From Octopus sinensis (Eukaryota), in NCBI RefSeq assembly GCF_006345805.1, contig NW_021827368.1, forward strand, positions 1-10,719: a stretch of 10,719 bases of DNA. Reading direction: 5' to 3'. The notes below the pieces were generated by a model, which was not told where the DNA came from, made no database searches, and saw only the letters and a program-made list of their open reading frames with translations. A program made the translations under genes and the position numbers. Positions 746-10,006 of the stretch are shown in pieces. How positions within the stretch are numbered: the first letter of the stretch is position 1; each line of letters starts with the position of its first letter.

Positions 746-1033
746 AAGGCGGCGAGCTGGCAGAAACGTTAGCACGCCGGGCGAAATTCTTAGCGGTATT
801 TCGTCTGCCGCTGCGTTCTGAGTTCAAATTCCGCCGAGGTCGACTTTGCCTTTCATCCTTTCGGGGTCGATAAATTAAGTACCAGTTACGCACCGGGGTC
901 GATATAATCGACTTAATCCGTTTGTCCCCTCTGTGTTTAGCCCCTTGTGGGAAATAAAGAAATGGGTATTTCGTCTGCCGCTACGTTCTGTGTTCAAATT
1001 CCGCCGAGGTCGACTTTGCCATTCATCCTTTCG
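746..1033 (+). mobile_element. SINE-A: tRNA-derived head + one unit (internal deletion) + 3'-truncated second headless unit
   Basis: Head AAGGCGGCGAGCTGGCAG (A-box-like), GAGTTCAAATTCC (B-box-like), core GCCTTTCATCCTTTCGGGGTCGATAAATTAAGTACCAG, which resembles the Meta/MESC SINE core domain as I recall it. Second unit starts at GGTATTTCG (~965) and breaks at 1033. Confidence 0.9.
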
Positions 1034-1752: not shown

Positions 1753-1833
1753 TTTCTCCGTATATACGTGTGGGAGCTAATGTTCAGTAGCTTTAAATAA
1801 CCTTCTTCTTCTCCTCCTTATTATTATTATACA

Positions 1834-2413
1834 AGGTGGTGTGCTGGCAGAAACGTTAGCACGCCGGGTGAAATGCTTAGCGGTATTTCGTCTGCCGTTA
1901 CGTTGTGAGTTCAAATTCCGCCGAGGTCGACTTTGCCTTTCATCCTTTCGGGGTCGATAAATTAAGTACCAGTTACGCACTGGGGTCGATGTAATCGACT
2001 TAATACCTATGTCTGTCCTTGTTTGTCCCCTCTATGTTTAGCCCCTTGTGGGTAATAAAGAAATAGATATTTCGTCTGCCGCTACGTTCTGAGTTCAAAT
2101 TCCGCCGAGGTCGACTTTGCCTTTCATCCTTTCGGGATCGATTAAATAAGTACCAGTTAGCCACTGGGGTCGAAATAATCGACTTAATCCGTTTGTCTGT
2201 CCTTGTTTGTCCCCTCTGTGTTTAGCTCCTTGTGGGTAGTAAAGAAATAGGTATTTCGCCCGCCGTTCCGTTCTGAGTTCAAATTCCGCCAAGGTCGACT
2301 TTACCTTTCATCCTTTCGGAGTCGATTATATAAGTACCAGTTACGCACTGAGGTCGATGTAATCGACTAGTCCCCTCCCCCCAAATTGCTGTCCTTGTGG
2401 CTAAATTTGAAAC

Positions 2414-2433
<20 letters not shown>
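1834..2433 (+). mobile_element. SINE-A composite: head + two 184-bp units + terminal body with a different tail ending in (TAT)n
   Basis: Unit starts at 1882, 2066 and 2250. Whole block is flanked by the direct repeat TTATTATTATTATACA (1818-1833 and 2434-2449), read as a TSD; the right copy merges with the (TAT)n run from 2414. Confidence 0.92.
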
Positions 2434-2447
<14 letters not shown>

Positions 2448-2579
2448 CACGTTCCTATCTGGCGAAGCTCTCGCCATTTTCATGAATGTAGGGAGGCAGG
2501 TACTGCCTTCTAGTGAGTTTATCAAAAGGTGGATGAGAGTGGAAAGATTGGTGGGGCTGAATGGGTCAACTCTGTTGAA

Positions 2580-2987: not shown

Positions 2988-3011
2988 GCTCACTATATAT
3001 ATATATATCTC

Positions 3012-3423
3012 TTTCTCTTTTACTCTTTTACTTGTTTCAGTCATTTGACTGCGGCCATGCTGGAGCACCACCTTTTAGTCGAGCAAATCGACCCCGGGAC
3101 TTATTCTTTGTAAGCCCAGTACTTATTCTATCGGTCTCTTTTGCCGAACCGCTAAGTGACGGGGATGTAAACACACCAGCATCGGTTGTCAAGCAATGCT
3201 AGGGGGACAAACAGAGACACACAAACACACACATACATATATATATATACATATATACGACAGGCTTCTTTCAGTTTCCGTCTACCAAATCCACTCACAT
3301 GGCATTGGTTGGCCCGGGGCTATAGCAGAAGACACTTGCCCAAGATGCCACGCAGTGGGACTGAACCCGGAACCACATGGTTGGTTAGCAAGCTACTTAC
3401 CACACAGCCACTCCTGCGCCTAT
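3012..3423 (-). mobile_element. SINE-B, full length (tRNA head, CORE-like segment, internal microsatellite, (AAAAGAGT)n tail)
   Basis: Minus strand reads ATAGGCGCAGGAGTGGCTGTGTGGTAAG (A box) ... GGGTTCAGTCCC (B box) ... CTTGGGCAAGTGTCTT (CORE-like). Flanked by (TA)n on both sides. Confidence 0.9.
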
Positions 3424-3432
3424 ATATATATA

Positions 3433-3792
3433 TACTCTTTTACTCTTTTACTTGTTTCAGTCATTTGACTGCGGCCATGCTGGAGCACCGCCTTGAATCG
3501 AGCAACTCGACCCCGCGACTTATTCTTTTGTAAGCCCAGTACTTATTCTATCGGACTCTTTGGCCGAACCGCTAAGTTACGGGGACATAAACATTGTCAA
3601 GCAATGCTAGGGGGACAAACACAGACACACAAACATACACGCACATATATATATATATATACATATATACGACGGGCTTCTTTCAGTTTTCCGTCTATCA
3701 AATCCACTCACAAGGCTTTGGTTGGCCCGAGGCTATAGTAGAAGACACTTGCCTAAGACACTTGCCATGTGGTTGGTAAACAAGCTACTTAC

Positions 3793-3860: not shown

Positions 3861-4327
3861 CCGTGAAACAGTTCCTAGGGGCTCTATCGCTAATGATCTT
3901 ACCCCTATACTCTTTAGGGACCATAGGTTGCAATCTGCTGTTTGAAATCTCCATATGTCTCAACTATAACTTTTTACCTGAGTTCCATACCCCTTCTCTC
4001 CGTATATTTAGCTCTACCGACGATTTTCCACAACTCACACCTTTCCAGCTCATTACTATACCCGTTTCACTGCTTGCCACCCTACCTTCTCAATATCAAT
4101 GCTGAAATTTTTAAAGAATGTTGATGTCTTTAGACCCAATTATCGTTGGGGGCAGATGTTCATGCGATTTCTCTGTTCCTTTCGACTCATACATTCCAAA
4201 GAATTCCCTGTGGACAATCTGAATTACTGTATAACCATTTGCGTATATTATTCTTATTGCCTGTTTATTGTTTTGGATTTCTATATATCCACCCCGAACA
4301 TACCAAAAGGAGCACGAGGTGGTTTTG
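3861..4327 (-). pseudogene. Decayed R4/Dong/Rex6-like non-LTR retrotransposon, C-terminal restriction-like endonuclease region
   Basis: Manual minus-strand translation with frameshifts: IVHREFFGMYESKGTEKSHEHLPPTIIGSKDINIL*..NFSIDIEKV..TGIVM..YGDFKQQIA..SLAIEPLGTVSR. This is colinear with the R4-clade pattern as I recall it (IVHWELCKKYG..EKWYEH.P..VIEN...KILWDFSIQTD..I.ARRPDIVV..YQDLK.EI..IVIGALGTVSK). Confidence 0.75.
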
Positions 4328-4344
4328 TTATTAAATGCTGATTT

Positions 4345-4560
4345 AAGGAAGCGAGCTGGTAGGATTGTTAGCATACCGGATAAAATGCTTAGCGGCATTT
4401 CTTCCAAATTTACGTTCGGAATGCAAATTTTTGCAGAGGTCCCCTTTGCCTTTCATCCTTTCAGTTTTGATGAAATAAGTACCAGTCAAATACTAGGGTC
4501 GATGTAATCGATAGGAACCCCTCCTCCACAATTTCAGACCTTGTGCTTATAGTAGATAAG
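4345..4560 (+). mobile_element. Old, diverged SINE-A with tail type b
   Basis: GCGAGCTGGTAGG head, TTTGCCTTTCATCCTTTC core, tail CCACAATTTCAGACCTTGTGCTTATAGTAG. Flanked by TTATTAAATGCTGATT (4328-4343) and TTATTAGATGCTAACT (4561-4576). Confidence 0.85.
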
Positions 4561-4576
4561 TTATTAGATGCTAACT

Positions 4577-6399
4577 TCATGCGGCGAGCTGGTAGAATCG
4601 TTAACACGACGGACGAAATGCTTAGCGGTATTTCGTCTACCGTTACGTTGTGAGTTCAAATTCCGCCGAGGTCGACTTTGCCTTTCATCCTTTCGGGGTC
4701 GATAAATTAAGTACCAGTTACGCACTGGGATCGATGTAATCGACTTAATACCTATGTCTGTCCTTGTTTGTCCCCTCTGTGTTTAGCCCCTTGTGGGTAA
4801 TAAAGAAATAGGTATTTCGTCTACCGCTACGTTCTGAGTTCAAATTCCGCCGAGGTCACTTTGCCTTTCATCCTTTCGGTCGATTAGATAAGTACCAGTT
4901 ACGCACTGAGGTCGAATAATCGACTTGATCCGTTTGTCTGTCCTTGTTTGTCCTCTCTGTGTTTAGCCCCTTGTGGGTAGTAAAGAAATAGGTATTTCGT
5001 CTGATACGTTCTGAGTCAAATCCCCGAGGTCAACTTTGCCTTTCATCCTTTCGGGGTCGATTAAATAAGTACCAGTTACGCACTGGGGTCGATATAATCG
5101 ACTTAATCCGTTTGTCTGTCCTTGTTTGTCCTCTCTGTGTTTAGCCCCTTGTGGGTAGTAAAGAAATAGGTATTTCGTCTGCCGATACGTTCTGAGTTCA
5201 AATTCCGCCGAGGTCAACTTTGCCTTTCATCCTTTCGGGGTCGATTAGATAAGTACCAGTTACGCACTGGGGTCGATATAATCGACTTGATCCGTTTGTC
5301 TGTCCTTGTTTGTCCTCTCTGTGTTTAGCCCCTTGTGGGTAGTAAAGAAATAGGTATTTCGTCTGCCGATACGTTCTGAGTTCAAATTCCGCCGAGGTCA
5401 ACTTTGTCTTTCATCCTTTCGGGGTCGATTAGATAAGTACCAGTTACGCACTGAGGTCGATATAATCGACTTGATCCGTTTGTCTGTCCTTGTTTGTCCT
5501 CTCTGTGTTTAGCCCCTTGTAGGTAGTAAAGAAATAGGTATTTCGTCTGCCGATACGTTCTGAGTTCAAATTCCGCCGAGGTCAACTTTGCCTTTCATCC
5601 TTTCGGGGTCGATTAAATAAGTACCAGTTACGCACTGGGGTCGATATAATCGACTTAATCCGTTTGTCTGTCCTTGTTTGTCCTCTCTGTGTTTAGCCCC
5701 TTGTAGGTAGTAAAGAAATAGGTATTTCGTCTGCCGATACGTCTGAGTTCAAATTCCGCCGAGGTCAACTTTGCCTTCTCCTTTCGGGGTCGATTAAATA
5801 AGTACCAGTTACGCACTGGGGTCGATATAATCGACTTAATCCGTTTGTCTGTCCTTGTTTGTCCTCTCTGTGTTTAGCCCCTTGTGGGTAGTAAAGAAAT
5901 AGGTATTTCGTCTGCCGAACGTTCTGAGTTCAAATTCCGCCGAGGTCAACTTTGCCTTTCATCCTTTCGGGGTCGATTAATAGTACCAGTTACGCCTGGG
6001 GTCGATATAAACGACTTAATCCGTTTGTCTGTCCTTGTTTGTCCTCGGTTTTAGCCCCTTGTGGGTAGTAAAAATAGGTATTTCGTCTGCCGATACGTTC
6101 TGAGTTCAAATTTCGCCGAAGTCGACTTTGCCTTTCATCCTTTCGGGATCGATTAAATAAGTACCAGTTACGCACTGGGGTCAATATAATCAACTAAATC
6201 CGTTTGTCCGCCCTTGTTTGTCCTCTCTGTGTTTAGCCCCTTCTGGGTAGTAAAGAAACAGGTATTTCTTCCGGCTTTACGTTTTAAGTTCAGATACTAA
6301 CGAAGTAGACTTTGCCTGGCATCCTTTCGGGATCGATAAAATAAATATCAGATGTAATCGACGAGCCCTTCCCGCATAATTTCAGGCGTTGTGAAAGGG
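4577..6399 (+). mobile_element. Old SINE-A split into head (4577-4626) and body (6261-6399) by a tandem array
   Basis: Head GCGGCGAGCTGGTAGAATCGTT and body GGTATTTCTTCCGG... are old-type like 4345-4560 and strongly diverged. Followed by a third target copy, TTATTAGATGCTGTTT (6400-6415). Confidence 0.8.
4627..6260 (+). repeat. Tandem array of nine headless SINE-A units, consensus 184 bp
   Basis: Unit starts (GGTATTTC) at 4627, 4811, 4991, 5169, 5353, 5537, 5721, 5902 and 6077; lengths 184, 180, 178, 184, 184, 184, 181, 175, 184. The small deletions could be long-read errors. Confidence 0.97.
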
Positions 6400-6415
6400 T
6401 TATTAGATGCTGTTT

Positions 6416-7310
6416 TTGAACTGTGGAAATCTGTACTTCAACGCATCCCTTAAGCCTATTCGTCACGTTTTCAAACTTTAATCGCACCAGGATTTTCGTC
6501 CAGAGCCCGAAAAATTTGTCGATGCATTGTCATATTTTGGGTGTTGCTTTGCTTCATCCCCCCCGCTTCTGTTTCCGGACTTTATGCATTTCGTAGATAA
6601 CGTATTTCAAATTCTTTAGATGCTACACATCCATTATACTTAACTAATTCAAACCTCTTTAACTCTTCCAACATCTGTCTCACACCAGTTTTTGCAACAA
6701 TTGTGCTTCATTAATCTTTTTACATTATTCACAATTAATTAATTCTCTGCCTACTGTTATACGAGATATACAAAATCCCCAGAACAGCAGTTCTGGAATA
6801 TTTTTCTAATGCTTTACGTATGGTCCCGTTGCTTTTCCTGTCTTTCTATCCAAACCGTTTCCCCCCACCCTCTTGGTGGAGCGGAGAAGGAGGCTTCTTC
6901 TTCCACTTCAATATTCCTCCACCACACCACTTTACTATTAATATGAACCAGATGTTAATGACCCGTGACTTATTTTCCCGATTTAGCTTAGATTTAAACA
7001 CTAATTTCAAACTCTTGAAGTATTTCTCTTCCAAATATTTCTCTCATATTTGATTCATGAATCTAATCTAACTCCATCGCACCTTCAGTATTTATAACTG
7101 TCAGCGACGATCTGTTTTTATAACGTTCTCATCCGGTAATTATACCACCATTATTTATTTACCATTATTTTCCCGTTTTTAACTACGAAAGCTCCACCCT
7201 CTTTTAACGCTAAATACCATCTTATATAGATTCACTCAACCTATCAACAGCTCGCATTAGCAAATCTATTTGATCGTTGTTTTCCCCATCAAACTCGAAT
7301 TATCTACAAA
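6416..7310 (-). pseudogene. Decayed R4-like non-LTR retrotransposon: RT catalytic region, thumb and downstream region
   Basis: Minus strand: FVDNSSLMGK...KMVF (~FMDDLKLYGK...KMEF, same spacing); LPDENVIK; SYKY; YFKSLKLVFKSKLNRENKSRVINIWFILIVKWCGGGILKW (~YFRRVRKILKSKLNGGN..KAINTWAV..VRYGAGILKW); LDRKTGK; LYIS..GRELINCE; LKGCVEVQISTVQKQ. Many stops and frameshifts. Confidence 0.85.
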
Positions 7311-7900: not shown

Positions 7901-8003
7901 AATTCACTGGAATTAGTTGGAATAGTCGCTACTAAGGTGAGTGGTCGATACCAAAAGAAGATAGTTACTTTGTGGGTGGATGACTATTGAGAACAAATTT
8001 ATA

Positions 8004-8497
8004 TTGGGCTGGTGCATAATTATTGCGGCTTTTTTTCAAGAAATTTTATTCAACAAAAGCAATAACAATGTTTAACAAAAACATCTTTAAATGATTATTC
8101 CGGGGCATATTCACCATCTACTTCAATACCTATTTCTTTATTACCCACAAGGAGCTAAACACAGAGGAGACAAACAAGGACAGACATAGGTATTAAGTCG
8201 ATTACATCGACCCCAGTGCGTAACCGGTACTTAATTTATCGACCCCGAAAGGATGAAAGGCTAAGTCGACCTCGGCGGAATTTGAACTCACAACGTAACG
8301 CAGACGAAATATCGCTAAGCATTTCGCCCGGCACGCTAACGTTTCTGCCAGCTCGCCGCCTTACTTCAATACCTGCTTCCCATTTGCTTGGCAGACGGTC
8401 AGACGGTCATTTAAAGATGTTTTTGTTAAATATTGTTATTGTTTTTGTTGAATAAAATTTGTTGAAAAAAAGCCGCAATAATTACGCACCAAACCGA
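8004..8497 (-). mobile_element. Mariner MITE copy 1, interrupted by SINE-A
   Basis: TA (8002-8003) then TTGGGCTGGTGCATAATTATTGCGG ... CCGCAATAATTACGCACCAAACCGA then TA (8498-8499). 251 bp once the SINE and one TSD copy are removed. Interior is the reverse complement of copy 2. Confidence 0.9.
8132..8361 (-). mobile_element. Full-length SINE-A monomer with array-type tail
   Basis: Runs from head to ...GTGGGTAATAAAGAAAT. Perfect 13-bp direct repeat TACTTCAATACCT at 8119-8131 and 8362-8374 (TSD). Confidence 0.95.
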
Positions 8498-8508
8498 TAG
8501 ATGTGACG

Positions 8509-8795: not shown

Positions 8796-8819
8796 GATGT
8801 GACGCAGACAGCAAATATT

Positions 8820-9069
8820 TTGGGTTGGTGCAAAATTATTGCGGCTTTTTTCAACAAGTTTTATTCAACAAAAACAATAACAATATTTAACAAAAACATC
8901 TTCAAATGACGGTCTGGCCGTCTGCCAAGCAAATGGGAAGCAGTAATTGAAGTAGATGGTGAATATGCTCCGGAATAAAAATTTAAAGATGTTTTTGTTG
9001 CATGTTGTTATTGTTTTTGTTGAATAAAAATTGTTGAAAAAGAGCCGCAATAATTATGCACCAACCTAA
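8820..9069 (+). mobile_element. Mariner MITE copy 2, 250 bp, ~88-bp inverted arms
   Basis: Ends TTGGGTTGGTGCAAAATTATTGCGG and CCGCAATAATTATGCACCAACCTAA|TA closely resemble the Hsmar1/MADE1 TIR (TTAGGTTGGTGCAAAAGTAATTGCGG). 8919-8978 encodes RLPSKWEAVIEVDGEYAPE*, a mariner transposase-like C-terminus. Confidence 0.92.
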
Positions 9070-9452
9070 TATATTTAACCTACTAATTCCTCCCTGAATG
9101 ATTCAATAGATGAGCCTATAATTGAAAATAGAGATTTATAACAACAATGATTTCTAGTATAAGAGCAAGGTCACACGTTGTCAAGAACTTGGTCGAGTCG
9201 TTGGTAGTGTATTTTAGTGACCCCGGAAGAAGGAAAGCAAAAGCGACCACGGCGGGATATGAACACAAAACGTTAGAAAAATCGTAATTAAATACCACAA
9301 AACAATTTATTTGGCTCTTTATCATTTGTGTCTACGATCAAAGACCGCGAGGAAAGACTGAACTTGATGCGTCAAGTTCGTTATTTGATTGGTGCTTATT
9401 TTCTTTCTTCTGGAAAAATTGAAATATGAAATATAATGACAAGGATGGAAAT

Positions 9453-9813
9453 ACTACTCTAGGCACAAGGCCCGAAAATTTTGGTAGTTGGGGCCAGTCG
9501 ATTAGATCAACTCCAGTACGTAACTGGTGCTTAGTTTATTGACCCCGAAAGGATGAAAGGCAAAGTCGATCTCGGCGGAATTTGAACTCAGAACGTAAAG
9601 ATAGACGTAATACCTGTTTCTTTACTACCCACAAGGGGCTGAACATAGAGAGGACAAACAAGGACAGACAGACGGATTAAGTCGATTATATCGACCCCAG
9701 TGCGTAACTGGTACTTAATTTATCGACCCCGAAAGGATGAAAGGCAAAGTCGACCTCGGCGGAATTTGAACTCAGAACGCGAAGACAGACGAAATACCTA
9801 TTTCTTTACTACC
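9453..9813 (-). mobile_element. SINE-A: partial tail + one 184-bp headless unit (9798-9615) + older terminal body with tail b
   Basis: Reverse complement gives GGTATTTCG unit ... AAAGAAACA|GGTATTACG body ... GGCCCCAACTACCAAAATTTTCGGGCCTTGTGCCTAGAG. Confidence 0.9.
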
Positions 9814-9819
9814 TACAAG

Positions 9820-10006
9820 GGTAGTAAAGAAATAGGTATTTCGTCTGTCACTACGTTCTGAGTTCAAATTCCCCCGAGGTCGACTTTGCCTTTCATCCTT
9901 TCGGGGTCGATAAATTAAGTACCAGTTACGCACTGGGGTCGATGTAGTCTGTCCTTGTTTGTCTTCTCTGTGTTTAGCCCCTTGTGGGTAGTAAAGAAAT
10001 AGGTAT
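9820..10006 (+). mobile_element. Headless SINE-A unit forming the right arm of a palindrome
   Basis: Reverse complement of 9610-9813 with a 17-nt deletion; ends in AAAGAAATAGGTAT. Confidence 0.9.

Follow-up and report, generated by a model that had tools for sequence, protein, structure and literature searches.

Headless units of a young SINE subfamily stand at one fixed site inside older SINE copies of an octopus DNA segment: a candidate homology-guided route to SINE arrays

The stretch analysed here, a window of 10,719 nt (10.7 kb), is octopus genomic DNA dense in short interspersed elements (SINEs) of one superfamily resembling transfer RNA (tRNA), and in five places these elements form head-to-tail arrays whose inner units lack a head and meet the next body at the same base. 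SINEs make up about 12%, or about a tenth, of an octopus genome. The inner units appear to be complete body-and-tail modules of a younger subfamily, nested between the head and the body of older SINE copies that differ from one another. The explanation that we favour, and to which we give an even chance, is that the units were added by reverse transcription primed at a GGTATT site behind the resident head, that the 5' end of each insertion was closed by homology, and that the long run of one subtype grew mostly locally or arrived as a single multi-unit complementary DNA (cDNA). A wider version of this explanation is more tentative: the 3' end of a SINE subfamily (…AAAUAGGUAUU) would pair with the conserved post-head site of its own superfamily, and homing of this kind would seed arrays by retrotransposition at thousands of SINEs, with one upstream promoter box shared by all units of an array.

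The window was taken to be octopus DNA because the closest protein relatives of the reading frames that cross the repeat are from Octopus bimaculoides; the only close ones are entries of that species (UniRef A0A0L8H450, A0A0L8HVT7; XP_052831724). One octopus protein was found by a word-indexed protein search and more by a full HMMER scan, and more distant relatives were found in the Logan assemblies of runs SRR11869384, 85, 90, 91 and 94, which come from a related species. The structure of the window was mapped by Tandem Repeats Finder (TRF) periods and by BLAST with head, unit and S-type probes, followed by in-register alignment. As expected of SINEs, the family occurs as dispersed short copies with variable target-site duplications: a solo copy of 231 nt, composites with 13- and 18-nt duplications, and diverged copies in the O. 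bimaculoides proteins and the Logan contigs.

A full element consists of a head (~48 nt, ending CTTAGC), a body starting GGTATTTCG, and a tail, and three kinds of sequence, S-type, subtype A and subtype B, can be distinguished by alignment. The tails of the S-type read CCCCTCC...CAAATTTCAGGCCTTGTG...TTATTA or end in (TTA)n; its members are the copy at 4345-4559, a very decayed copy at 9150-9370 on the minus strand, and the terminal bodies of the arrays. Subtypes A and B have their first 119 nt in common with the S-type bodies and then continue into a distinct 65-nt tail, TAATCCGTTTG...AAAGAAATA, which closes in ...AAAGAAATAGGTATT. The tail end AAAGAAATA is followed by (A)GGTAT(T), the same 6-7 nt that stands behind the head in every relative. 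The S-type copies appear to be old and the A and B copies to form a younger lineage. Homology of the unit tail with the S-type tail seemed plausible by eye, but local alignments failed against shuffled sequences, 3 to 486 of 500 of which reached the score. An A-box-like TGGCAGAAACG in the head and a B-box-like GAGTTCAAATTCC at unit positions 27-39 were both read by eye; no tRNA was found in the window by ARAGORN, and Rfam gave no tRNA match at E<=1. For the first 99 nt, a fold of -39.8 kcal/mol (z = -2.15) is predicted in which GGUAUU starts the 3' arm of a 12-bp hairpin. The Rfam search of the whole window at E<=1 gave no hammerhead, hepatitis delta virus (HDV)-like or other ribozyme and no RNA-processing family at GGTATT; its sole matches were spurious microRNA (miRNA)-hairpin calls on palindromes.

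The longest array occupies 4578-6398. In TRF its period is 184 bp over 4627-6351, with 9.5 copies at 93% matches and a score of 2876, and the BLAST probes place a head at 4581-4627 and unit starts at 4627, 4811, 4991, 5169, 5353, 5537, 5721, 5902 and 6077. As assembled, units 1 to 9 (4627-6260) are 184, 180, 178, 184, 184, 184, 181, 175 and 184 bp long. The head of the host SINE, here called S' (4578-4626, plus strand), ends in CTTAGC and carries the S-type variants TGGTAGAAT and CGGACGAAATG; the variants TGGTAGRAT and CGGA are common to this head and the head at 4345 and are not found in the A/B-type heads at 746, 1833 and 8362. Unit 1 (4627-4810, plus strand) is a young unit of subtype A with 0-1 private substitutions. 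It is 98.4% identical to 1882-2065 and 96% identical to the solo copy at 8132-8362, and only about 90-92% identical to units 2-9, which belong to subtype B (4811-6260, plus strand). Unit 9 is the most diverged unit of the array (8 private substitutions) and ends AAAGAAACA. The terminal body and tail of S' (6261-6398, plus strand) begin with the S-type GGTATTTCTTCC, have a 16-nt gap and a T4 run at 6282, and end ...CATAATTTCAGGCGTTGTGAAAGG; the part found by BLAST (6261-6351) passes into a different tail. The terminal body has 21 substitutions in 102 aligned positions besides the gap, and 29 private substitutions in 125 nt. The S-type variants common to this head and that at 4345, and the S-type GGTATTTCTTCC with which the terminal body opens, assign both parts to one S-type host. 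The earlier note on this DNA had described head and terminal body alike as strongly diverged and the units between them as near-identical. The first description suits the terminal body and not the head, which is an S-type subfamily variant with its CpGs kept, and unit 1, being of another subtype, departs from the second.

Immediately upstream, at 4345-4559 on the plus strand, the BLAST map and the alignment show a complete old S-type SINE with head, body and CCCCTCC...TTATTA tail. A mutation has turned its post-head site into GGCATT, where no insertion is present, and the element contains T5 at 4428 and T4 at 4465. Near-identical 18-nt copies of a target-site duplication stand upstream of this SINE (4327-4344, GTTATTAAATGCTGATTT), between the two S-type elements (4560-4577, GTTATTAGATGCTAACTT) and at the end of S', which the last copy closes (6399-6416, GTTATTAGATGCTGTTTT). 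The arrangement, duplication-SINE-duplication-SINE-duplication, is a target-site triplication; in self-BLAST, 4327-4511 aligns to 4560-4743 with 77% identity. It came about either by two insertions at a single site containing TTATTA or through the tandem duplication, long ago, of a SINE together with its duplication.

The layout of head, units and terminal body recurs, as the earlier note had stated, at 4578-6398 (n=9), at 1833-2448 (n=2), at 9440-9822 (n at least 1, head lost) and, truncated, at 746-1033. As in SINE-derived satellites, a portion of the SINE is repeated head to tail at several loci, with terminal units that reach the SINE end. The second array (1820-2448, plus strand), in which TRF finds the 184-bp period at 1884-2368 (2.6 copies), is bounded by the duplication ATTATTATTATAC at 1820-1832 and 2436-2448 and consists of a head (1833-1881), an A unit (1882-2065), a B unit (2066-2249) and, at 2250-2435, an older terminal body whose tail is (TTA)n. 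The third (746-1033, plus strand) has a head at 746-794, a unit at 795-964 with a 14-nt internal deletion, and a second unit at 965-1033 that is cut at about position 70; this break, with neither tail nor duplication, suggests a later deletion. A (TTG)n/(TCG)n microsatellite at 678-745 abuts its head. The fourth (9440-9822, minus strand) retains 22 nt of a unit end (9801-9822), a unit at 9617-9800 ending AAAGAAACA, and an older S-type body with tail at 9440-9616. Its inverted partner (9823-10006, plus strand) begins with 14 nt of the end of the preceding unit and continues with one unit, which has a 17-nt internal deletion, before AGGTAT and non-SINE flank.

In all these arrays the unit-to-body junction lies at the identical base, ...AAAGAAAYA followed by GGTATTTCG, in 15 of 15 joins. 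Each of the window's 17 unit 3' ends is directly followed by G[G/A]TAT, also the two that are succeeded by non-SINE DNA, namely the end of the solo copy and the end at 10001, which reads ...AAATAGGTATATATT. The 3' junction is thus invariant at a defined target in this small sample of 17 ends from one window. The solo copy is a full-length A-type SINE of head and one unit (8132-8362, 231 nt, minus strand), flanked by a 12-13-bp duplication, AGGTATTGAAGTA, at 8119-8131 and 8362-8374 (whole feature 8119-8374). It sits inside a palindromic element resembling a miniature inverted-repeat transposable element (MITE), and the uninterrupted paralogue of that element at 8915-8985 shows the empty site (AGTAATTGAAGTA). 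Both copies of the duplication contain AGGTATT, for which the chance is about 6e-5; therefore the target held AGGTATT before the insertion. These results fit the inference of the earlier note that the 3' end of the subfamily pairs with the GGTATT site in its relatives. Because the solo head and unit stop at this base with a target-site duplication and an empty paralogous site, and because related-species copies end at the same base (...AAAGAAATA, then unrelated DNA), the unit 3' end is the natural terminus of the young subfamily; the unit 5' edge is the first base behind the head. The S-type duplications likewise open with the S-type tail motif (GTTATTA at 4327, 4560 and 6399; (TTA)n at 1820 and 2436). 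The simplest reading of this tail-to-target matching is that the last bases of the RNA would pair with the nicked target.

The last 65 nt of the unit are absent from the host bodies and tails in the alignment, so the units are not duplicates of the host, and simple host duplication, which the earlier note had also excluded, does not account for the arrays. A single pair of duplications encloses each whole composite (1820-1832/2436-2448 and 4560-4577/6399-6416). Head type, body and tail vary among the three hosts of the window, and all three have the same junction, which argues for recurrent formation of composites. Pairwise identity among the terminal bodies is 67-82%; per 125 nt they have 4-29 private substitutions, compared with 0-3 in most inner units. 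On the body side, bases specific to the host reappear 7, 9 and 10 nt past the junction in the three terminal bodies; on the head side, both heads still show them 13 nt ahead of it. If joins were free to fall anywhere in the 119 nt of shared body, the chance that three of three would lie within 10 nt is about 6e-4; each added block would measure 184 nt, give or take about ten. The precise join and the natural 3' terminus together argue for a step that starts at the 3' end of an RNA and against homology-driven conversion. Private changes increase from head to tail: the A units (0-1) adjoin the head in both headed arrays, the B units that adjoin terminal bodies are the most changed, and two of the latter end in the older-looking AAAGAAACA. 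At the three places where they occur, A units are 96-98% identical with 0-3 private changes.

The copies in the related species show that the family commonly associates with itself, since it adjoins or sits inside its own copies in 7 of about 11 SINE-bearing segments. A unit end joins the head at position about 17 through a shared AGAAA in three contigs (L066, L067, L068) and at position about 8 in L077, on whose minus strand a unit is also followed by 22 nt of head and an S-type body with tail. Contig L069 (100-660) holds a full head-to-tail dimer with an 11-nt spacer, L076 (1780-2143) an S-type copy followed by a full copy, and L072 (2435-2677) an inverted pair whose members meet within the body. 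The GGTATT that follows the head is an old feature, exact in 4 of 10 related-species copies and near-exact in the rest; GGTAT after the tail is seen in the lineage of this window only. Self-association is thus a trait of the family, and the seamless headless junction is specific to the lineage with GGTATT after its tail, as a microhomology-guided process would predict.

We observe the footprints of the process in the window; its enzymology, with target priming of reverse transcription and 5' joining guided by homology, and how much of the growth each step contributed are what we infer from them. In the sequence of events that we propose, the bottom strand would be nicked at the left edge of GGTATT in a resident SINE; resident SINEs would be frequent targets, with GGTATT behind each head. 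The ...AGGUAUU end of a young RNA would pair at the nick, and reverse transcription would copy its tail and body. The top strand would be cut some bases downstream, leaving a free end (...CTTAGC GGTATTTCG...) that is homologous to the body start just copied. Once this region existed in the cDNA, the free end would anneal to it and prime the second strand. The head would never be incorporated, and one headless module of 184 nt would be added seamlessly, with a duplication that would be invisible, being itself the shared sequence. Repeats of the process would have set A units beside the head in two hosts that differ. The series of B units, eight in all (4811-6260), would have grown mostly by unequal exchange or slippage, or would have come as one multi-unit cDNA.

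This last step is proposed because units 2-9 share array-specific variants and interleaved linked haplotypes. Position 17 A (GATACG) is found in units 3-9 and position 48 A (GTCAAC) in units 3-8, and these variants occur in 0 of 8 units at the five other places. Positions 80 and 121 are perfectly linked, with G-G in units 2, 4 and 5 and A-A in units 3 and 6-9, so that the two haplotypes alternate along the array, and further variants are common to subsets of units 2-9. Most of n=9 is therefore probably due to local amplification or within-array exchange, or to one multi-unit cDNA event, and not to separate homings; such homogenisation within an array is seen in the single long array. Thus, the core of the self-homing process suggested in the earlier note (fixed junction, natural terminus, different hosts) is supported, while the implied nine separate homings are not.

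Several observations weigh against the reading of recurrent, homology-guided addition. The evidence base is one window of 10.7 kb and about ten short contigs of a related species, and ages were judged from private substitutions in a handful of copies. No long interspersed element (LINE) was identified in the window or in the related-species contigs. The SINE-SINE junctions of the related species are scattered (head position about 8, about 17, full head after a spacer, 22 nt of head). The first 9-17 nt of the new units have no clear host variants, except perhaps in the unit at 9617-9800. The A-then-B order is the same in both headed arrays, which could be due to a favoured site next to the head, to chance (1/4 or less), or to gene conversion between the three A copies that lie within 6.5 kb. 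The predicted 12-bp hairpin, of which the site forms the 3' arm, could also favour slippage at the DNA level. Finally, the host parts may represent another subfamily, or may have been inherited already diverged if composites retrotranspose whole. The age contrast at one locus would then be weaker evidence than it seems, because moving composites would bring an old-looking host and young-looking units together; the old-looking ends could come from the source of the composite.

Three copies bear directly on the movement of whole composites. The first, at 1490-1752 on the minus strand, is a partial inverted copy of the 4527-46xx region. From the S tail it has the final 49 nt, followed by duplication copy 2, head 2 in rearranged form and a unit of type B, and it ends ...GTAAAGAAAG. 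Over 72 nt it is 100% identical to 4527-4598 (the end of the S tail, the middle duplication and the start of head 2). In its head 2, a 15-nt tandem duplication, GCGAGCTGGTAGAAT, stands in place of 21 nt, and its B unit has an internal deletion and none of the array-specific variants; the copy may preserve an earlier state of the locus, from a time when the A unit had yet to arrive and those variants to spread. Derivation from unit 9 specifically was considered and rejected, since the two share only two extra bases and the copy, over its first 124 nt, resembles units 4 and 6, apart from the array variants, more closely; read-through from the RNA polymerase III (Pol III) promoter of the upstream SINE is an unlikely source of the template, given T5 at 4428. 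The second copy is the inverted partner at 9823-10006, with its 14 nt of preceding unit, and the third is the related-species contig L068, in which flanking DNA on both sides encloses 20 nt of unit end, a head that starts at position about 17 and a unit, in this order. All three resemble 5'-truncated retrocopies of multimers or composites, probably copied via RNA, and this too counts against recurrent addition. The movement of multimers as wholes, which the earlier note had set against its own reading, is thus indicated in part. The evidence on whether the same parts recur in the same order at many loci is divided in this small sample: the three hosts differ, which speaks against it, and the three 5'-truncated copies of multi-part templates speak for it.

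These copies lend some credit to a one-event origin, in which the reverse transcriptase copies an S-type RNA as far as GGUAUU, jumps by the 6-7-nt match to the 3' end of an A/B RNA, or re-anneals there repeatedly, and finishes through the head, after which whole composites spread. We consider this origin possible but doubtful. Composites of head, units and body would then be transcribed and retrotransposed whole, the units having no T4 terminator, and their old-looking ends would be inherited and not older locally, a course of events that we likewise hold to be doubtful. The single duplication pair around each composite fits such an origin, as does the lack of any run of T>=4 from 4581 to 6049 or 6282 and from 1833 to 2477. 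Multi-part RNA templates are indicated by 9823-10006 and L068, which begin inside the preceding unit, and by 1490-1752, which spans S tail, duplication, head 2 and unit; the near-identity of units 3-8 would follow from one RNA source, and a junction of unit end with head position 17 is found at three loci in the related species. However, the hosts differ in head type, terminal body and tail, so that there must have been at least three separate composites and their formation was recurrent regardless. Between the two headed arrays, A units are 98%, B units about 93% and heads about 87% identical, so the arrays are not copies of one composite. A terminal body as decayed as that at 6261-6398 is an unlikely active template, and the host at 4578-6398 has an 18-nt duplication and subfamily variants in common with the adjacent SINE at 4345-4559.

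A purely DNA-level origin, by replication slippage, unequal crossing-over or ectopic gene conversion (synthesis-dependent strand annealing from an array donor) and with no new retrotransposition, is unlikely. It has a predicted 12-bp hairpin at the head/body boundary in its favour, together with the 6-7-bp direct repeats of GGTATT that bound the solo element, the palindromic junction at 9822 and the inverted partial duplicate at 1490-1752. The array-specific variants and interleaved haplotypes of units 2-9 show DNA-level exchange, and unequal recombination has been proposed for SINE-derived satellites and for clam SINE arrays (PMC10702118, PMC11481361). Such a process does not explain the first join, however: where unit and host body first meet, the natural 3' terminus of an element stands exactly on GGTATT belonging to a different element, which slippage within a single element cannot bring about. 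A conversion boundary would be expected anywhere in 119 nt, but its distance from the junction is no more than 7-10 nt (3 of 3 bodies) and, towards the head, no more than 13 nt (2 of 2 heads), and the solo copy shows this lineage inserting at AGGTATT with target-site duplications.

An assembly artefact (a collapsed or expanded repeat in an unpolished long-read consensus) is very unlikely to account in part for the nine-unit array's length and fine structure, for although 20 bases are deleted in 13 events of 1-3 nt with zero insertions, in units 2, 3, 7 and 8 only (4811-5168, 5721-6076) and several in short homopolymers, so that these small deletions are probably unpolished long-read consensus error, five separate arrays in 10.7 kb have the same junction, the units carry structured shared substitutions and not random noise, related arrangements occur in independent short-read assemblies of another species, and an artefact could alter n but not the architecture.

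The window contains further copies and repeats. A very old S-type SINE at 9150-9370 on the minus strand, placed by the BLAST map and alignment, has a decayed head and an intact, unoccupied GGTATT site. The sequence AATACCT, which is AGGTATT on the opposite strand, occurs inside the unit at position about 124-131 in subtype A alone (4752, 2007, 8189); it could serve as a target if the same lineage inserted in inverted orientation, but no such insertion was seen in the window. The fourth array and its inverted partner, two 5'-truncated arrays head to head, meet in a near-perfect palindrome at 9780-9850 (GACGAAATACCTATTTCTTTACTAC / CTACAAGG / GTAGTAAAGAAATAGGTATTTCGTC). Its topology is that of twin priming or of a fold-back rearrangement, and it is the origin of several of the sub-threshold Rfam miRNA matches. 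No convincing target-site duplications were found for the 9440-10006 palindrome or for 1490-1752. The palindromic MITE-like element is ~260 bp long and is present in two copies (8000-8500 and 8813-9076) that are about 90-92% identical, the first being split by the solo SINE; a sub-threshold Rfam match of this element to the MIR1435 hairpin is spurious. A second, unrelated SINE-like family of ~350-430 bp with a microsatellite-rich middle is found at 2993-3345 and 3420-3758 and, inverted, at 2580-2900. On the minus strand it reads GGCGCAGGAGTGGCTGTGTGGTAAG...GGTTCCGGGTTCAGTCC; the tandem pair is 87% identical, and the inverted third copy is 69% identical.

Searches beyond octopus gave no further relatives of the repeat. 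Four scans with unit-specific 20-mers, two of viral contigs and one each of Joint Genome Institute (JGI) metagenomes and prokaryote genomes, gave 3, 59, 2 and 1 matches, and BLAST showed no SINE similarity in those compared; the last three were assumed to be chance. Exact look-ups with the open reading frame (ORF) of the array in the window and with the O. bimaculoides proteins matched no contigs. Six multi-repeat HMMER matches (P0005, P0008, P0009, P0017, P0019, P0020) were rejected as repeat proteins without SINE-derived sequence that have only a TGTY-like motif in common with the array; they were taken as bacterial.

Squamate reptiles have well-established tandem satellites of SINE origin (Vassetzky, Kosushkin, Ryskov 2023, PMC10702118), and arrays of the form TSD1-(SINE)n-TSD1, where TSD denotes a target-site duplication, have been described in the ark clam Scapharca broughtonii (Martelossi et al. 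2024, PMC11481361). A route from SINE to satellite, which the earlier note thought possibly undescribed, has therefore already been published (PMC10702118, PMC11481361). The squamate satellites resemble the octopus arrays in repeating a SINE portion that includes box B in tandem, at many independent loci, with a longer terminal unit that reaches the SINE terminus (PMC10702118). Their subvariants are locus-specific and often alternate, their longer arrays are more homogeneous, and their unit is near nucleosome size. However, the squamate unit is an internal piece of one SINE, for which unequal recombination or repeated insertion at one locus has been proposed as the start, whereas the octopus unit is the complete body and tail of a younger subfamily with its natural 3' terminus, nested at one microhomology site in older, different hosts. 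The ark clam arrays, also from a mollusc, have a first copy with a full head, headless inner copies, a last copy with a full tail and one duplication pair (PMC11481361), and palindromic SINE pairs are common there as well. The difference is that the inner clam copies are truncated at both ends of the same SINE, while the inner octopus units keep their own full tail, which is unlike that of the host, and appear younger than the host.

The proposed mechanism also has counterparts among LINEs. R2 elements form uniform, precise 5' junctions where the cDNA pairs with upstream target DNA (Eickbush et al. 2013, PMC3774820), and pairing between tail and target is known for LINEs with short repeat tails and for the microsatellite- or repeat-targeting elements of the R4/Dong clade, which have a restriction-like endonuclease (PMC4640811). 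Among the LINEs of Octopus vulgaris, those of the Dong-R4 group have been reported as the most active (PMC13282606). A fixed 3' junction, a precise 5' junction made by cDNA annealing upstream, and a multicopy target are common to R2, R4/Dong and the arrays described here, and the S-type copies in the window sit at TTATTA or (TTA)n targets. Unlike R2 and R4, the octopus case has the element's own relatives as target and a non-autonomous SINE as mover.

Microhomology has reportedly been found at the junctions of 5'-truncated L1 and Alu copies, where twin priming is also said to occur, and target-site triplication has reportedly been described for Alu. In the truncated mammalian copies, as here, the 5' end lies where the cDNA matches the target end; the topology at 9440-10006 is that of twin priming, and 4327-6416 is a target-site triplication. 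Truncation points of mammalian L1 and Alu are scattered at short chance microhomologies, whereas the octopus target supplies the same homology each time. Our literature search found no paper on SINE arrays of this kind in octopus or other cephalopods. Three features set the octopus arrays apart from the squamate and clam cases: inner units that are complete body-tail modules of a younger subfamily, their nesting in older and different hosts, and a single 6-7-nt match that explains both unit edges.

Dispersed repeats are usually held to become tandem through chance duplication, with unequal exchange acting afterwards. If the octopus arrays are seeded by retrotransposition guided by a 6-7-nt match between the 3' end of the element and an internal site, this would be a deterministic route from SINE to satellite that could recur at many loci. 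It would also be a clear natural case of homology setting the 5' end of a non-LTR (LTR, long terminal repeat) insertion, so far documented mainly for R2. Arrays, palindromes and nested SINE copies of this kind in octopus are likely to confuse repeat annotation, age estimates and assemblies.

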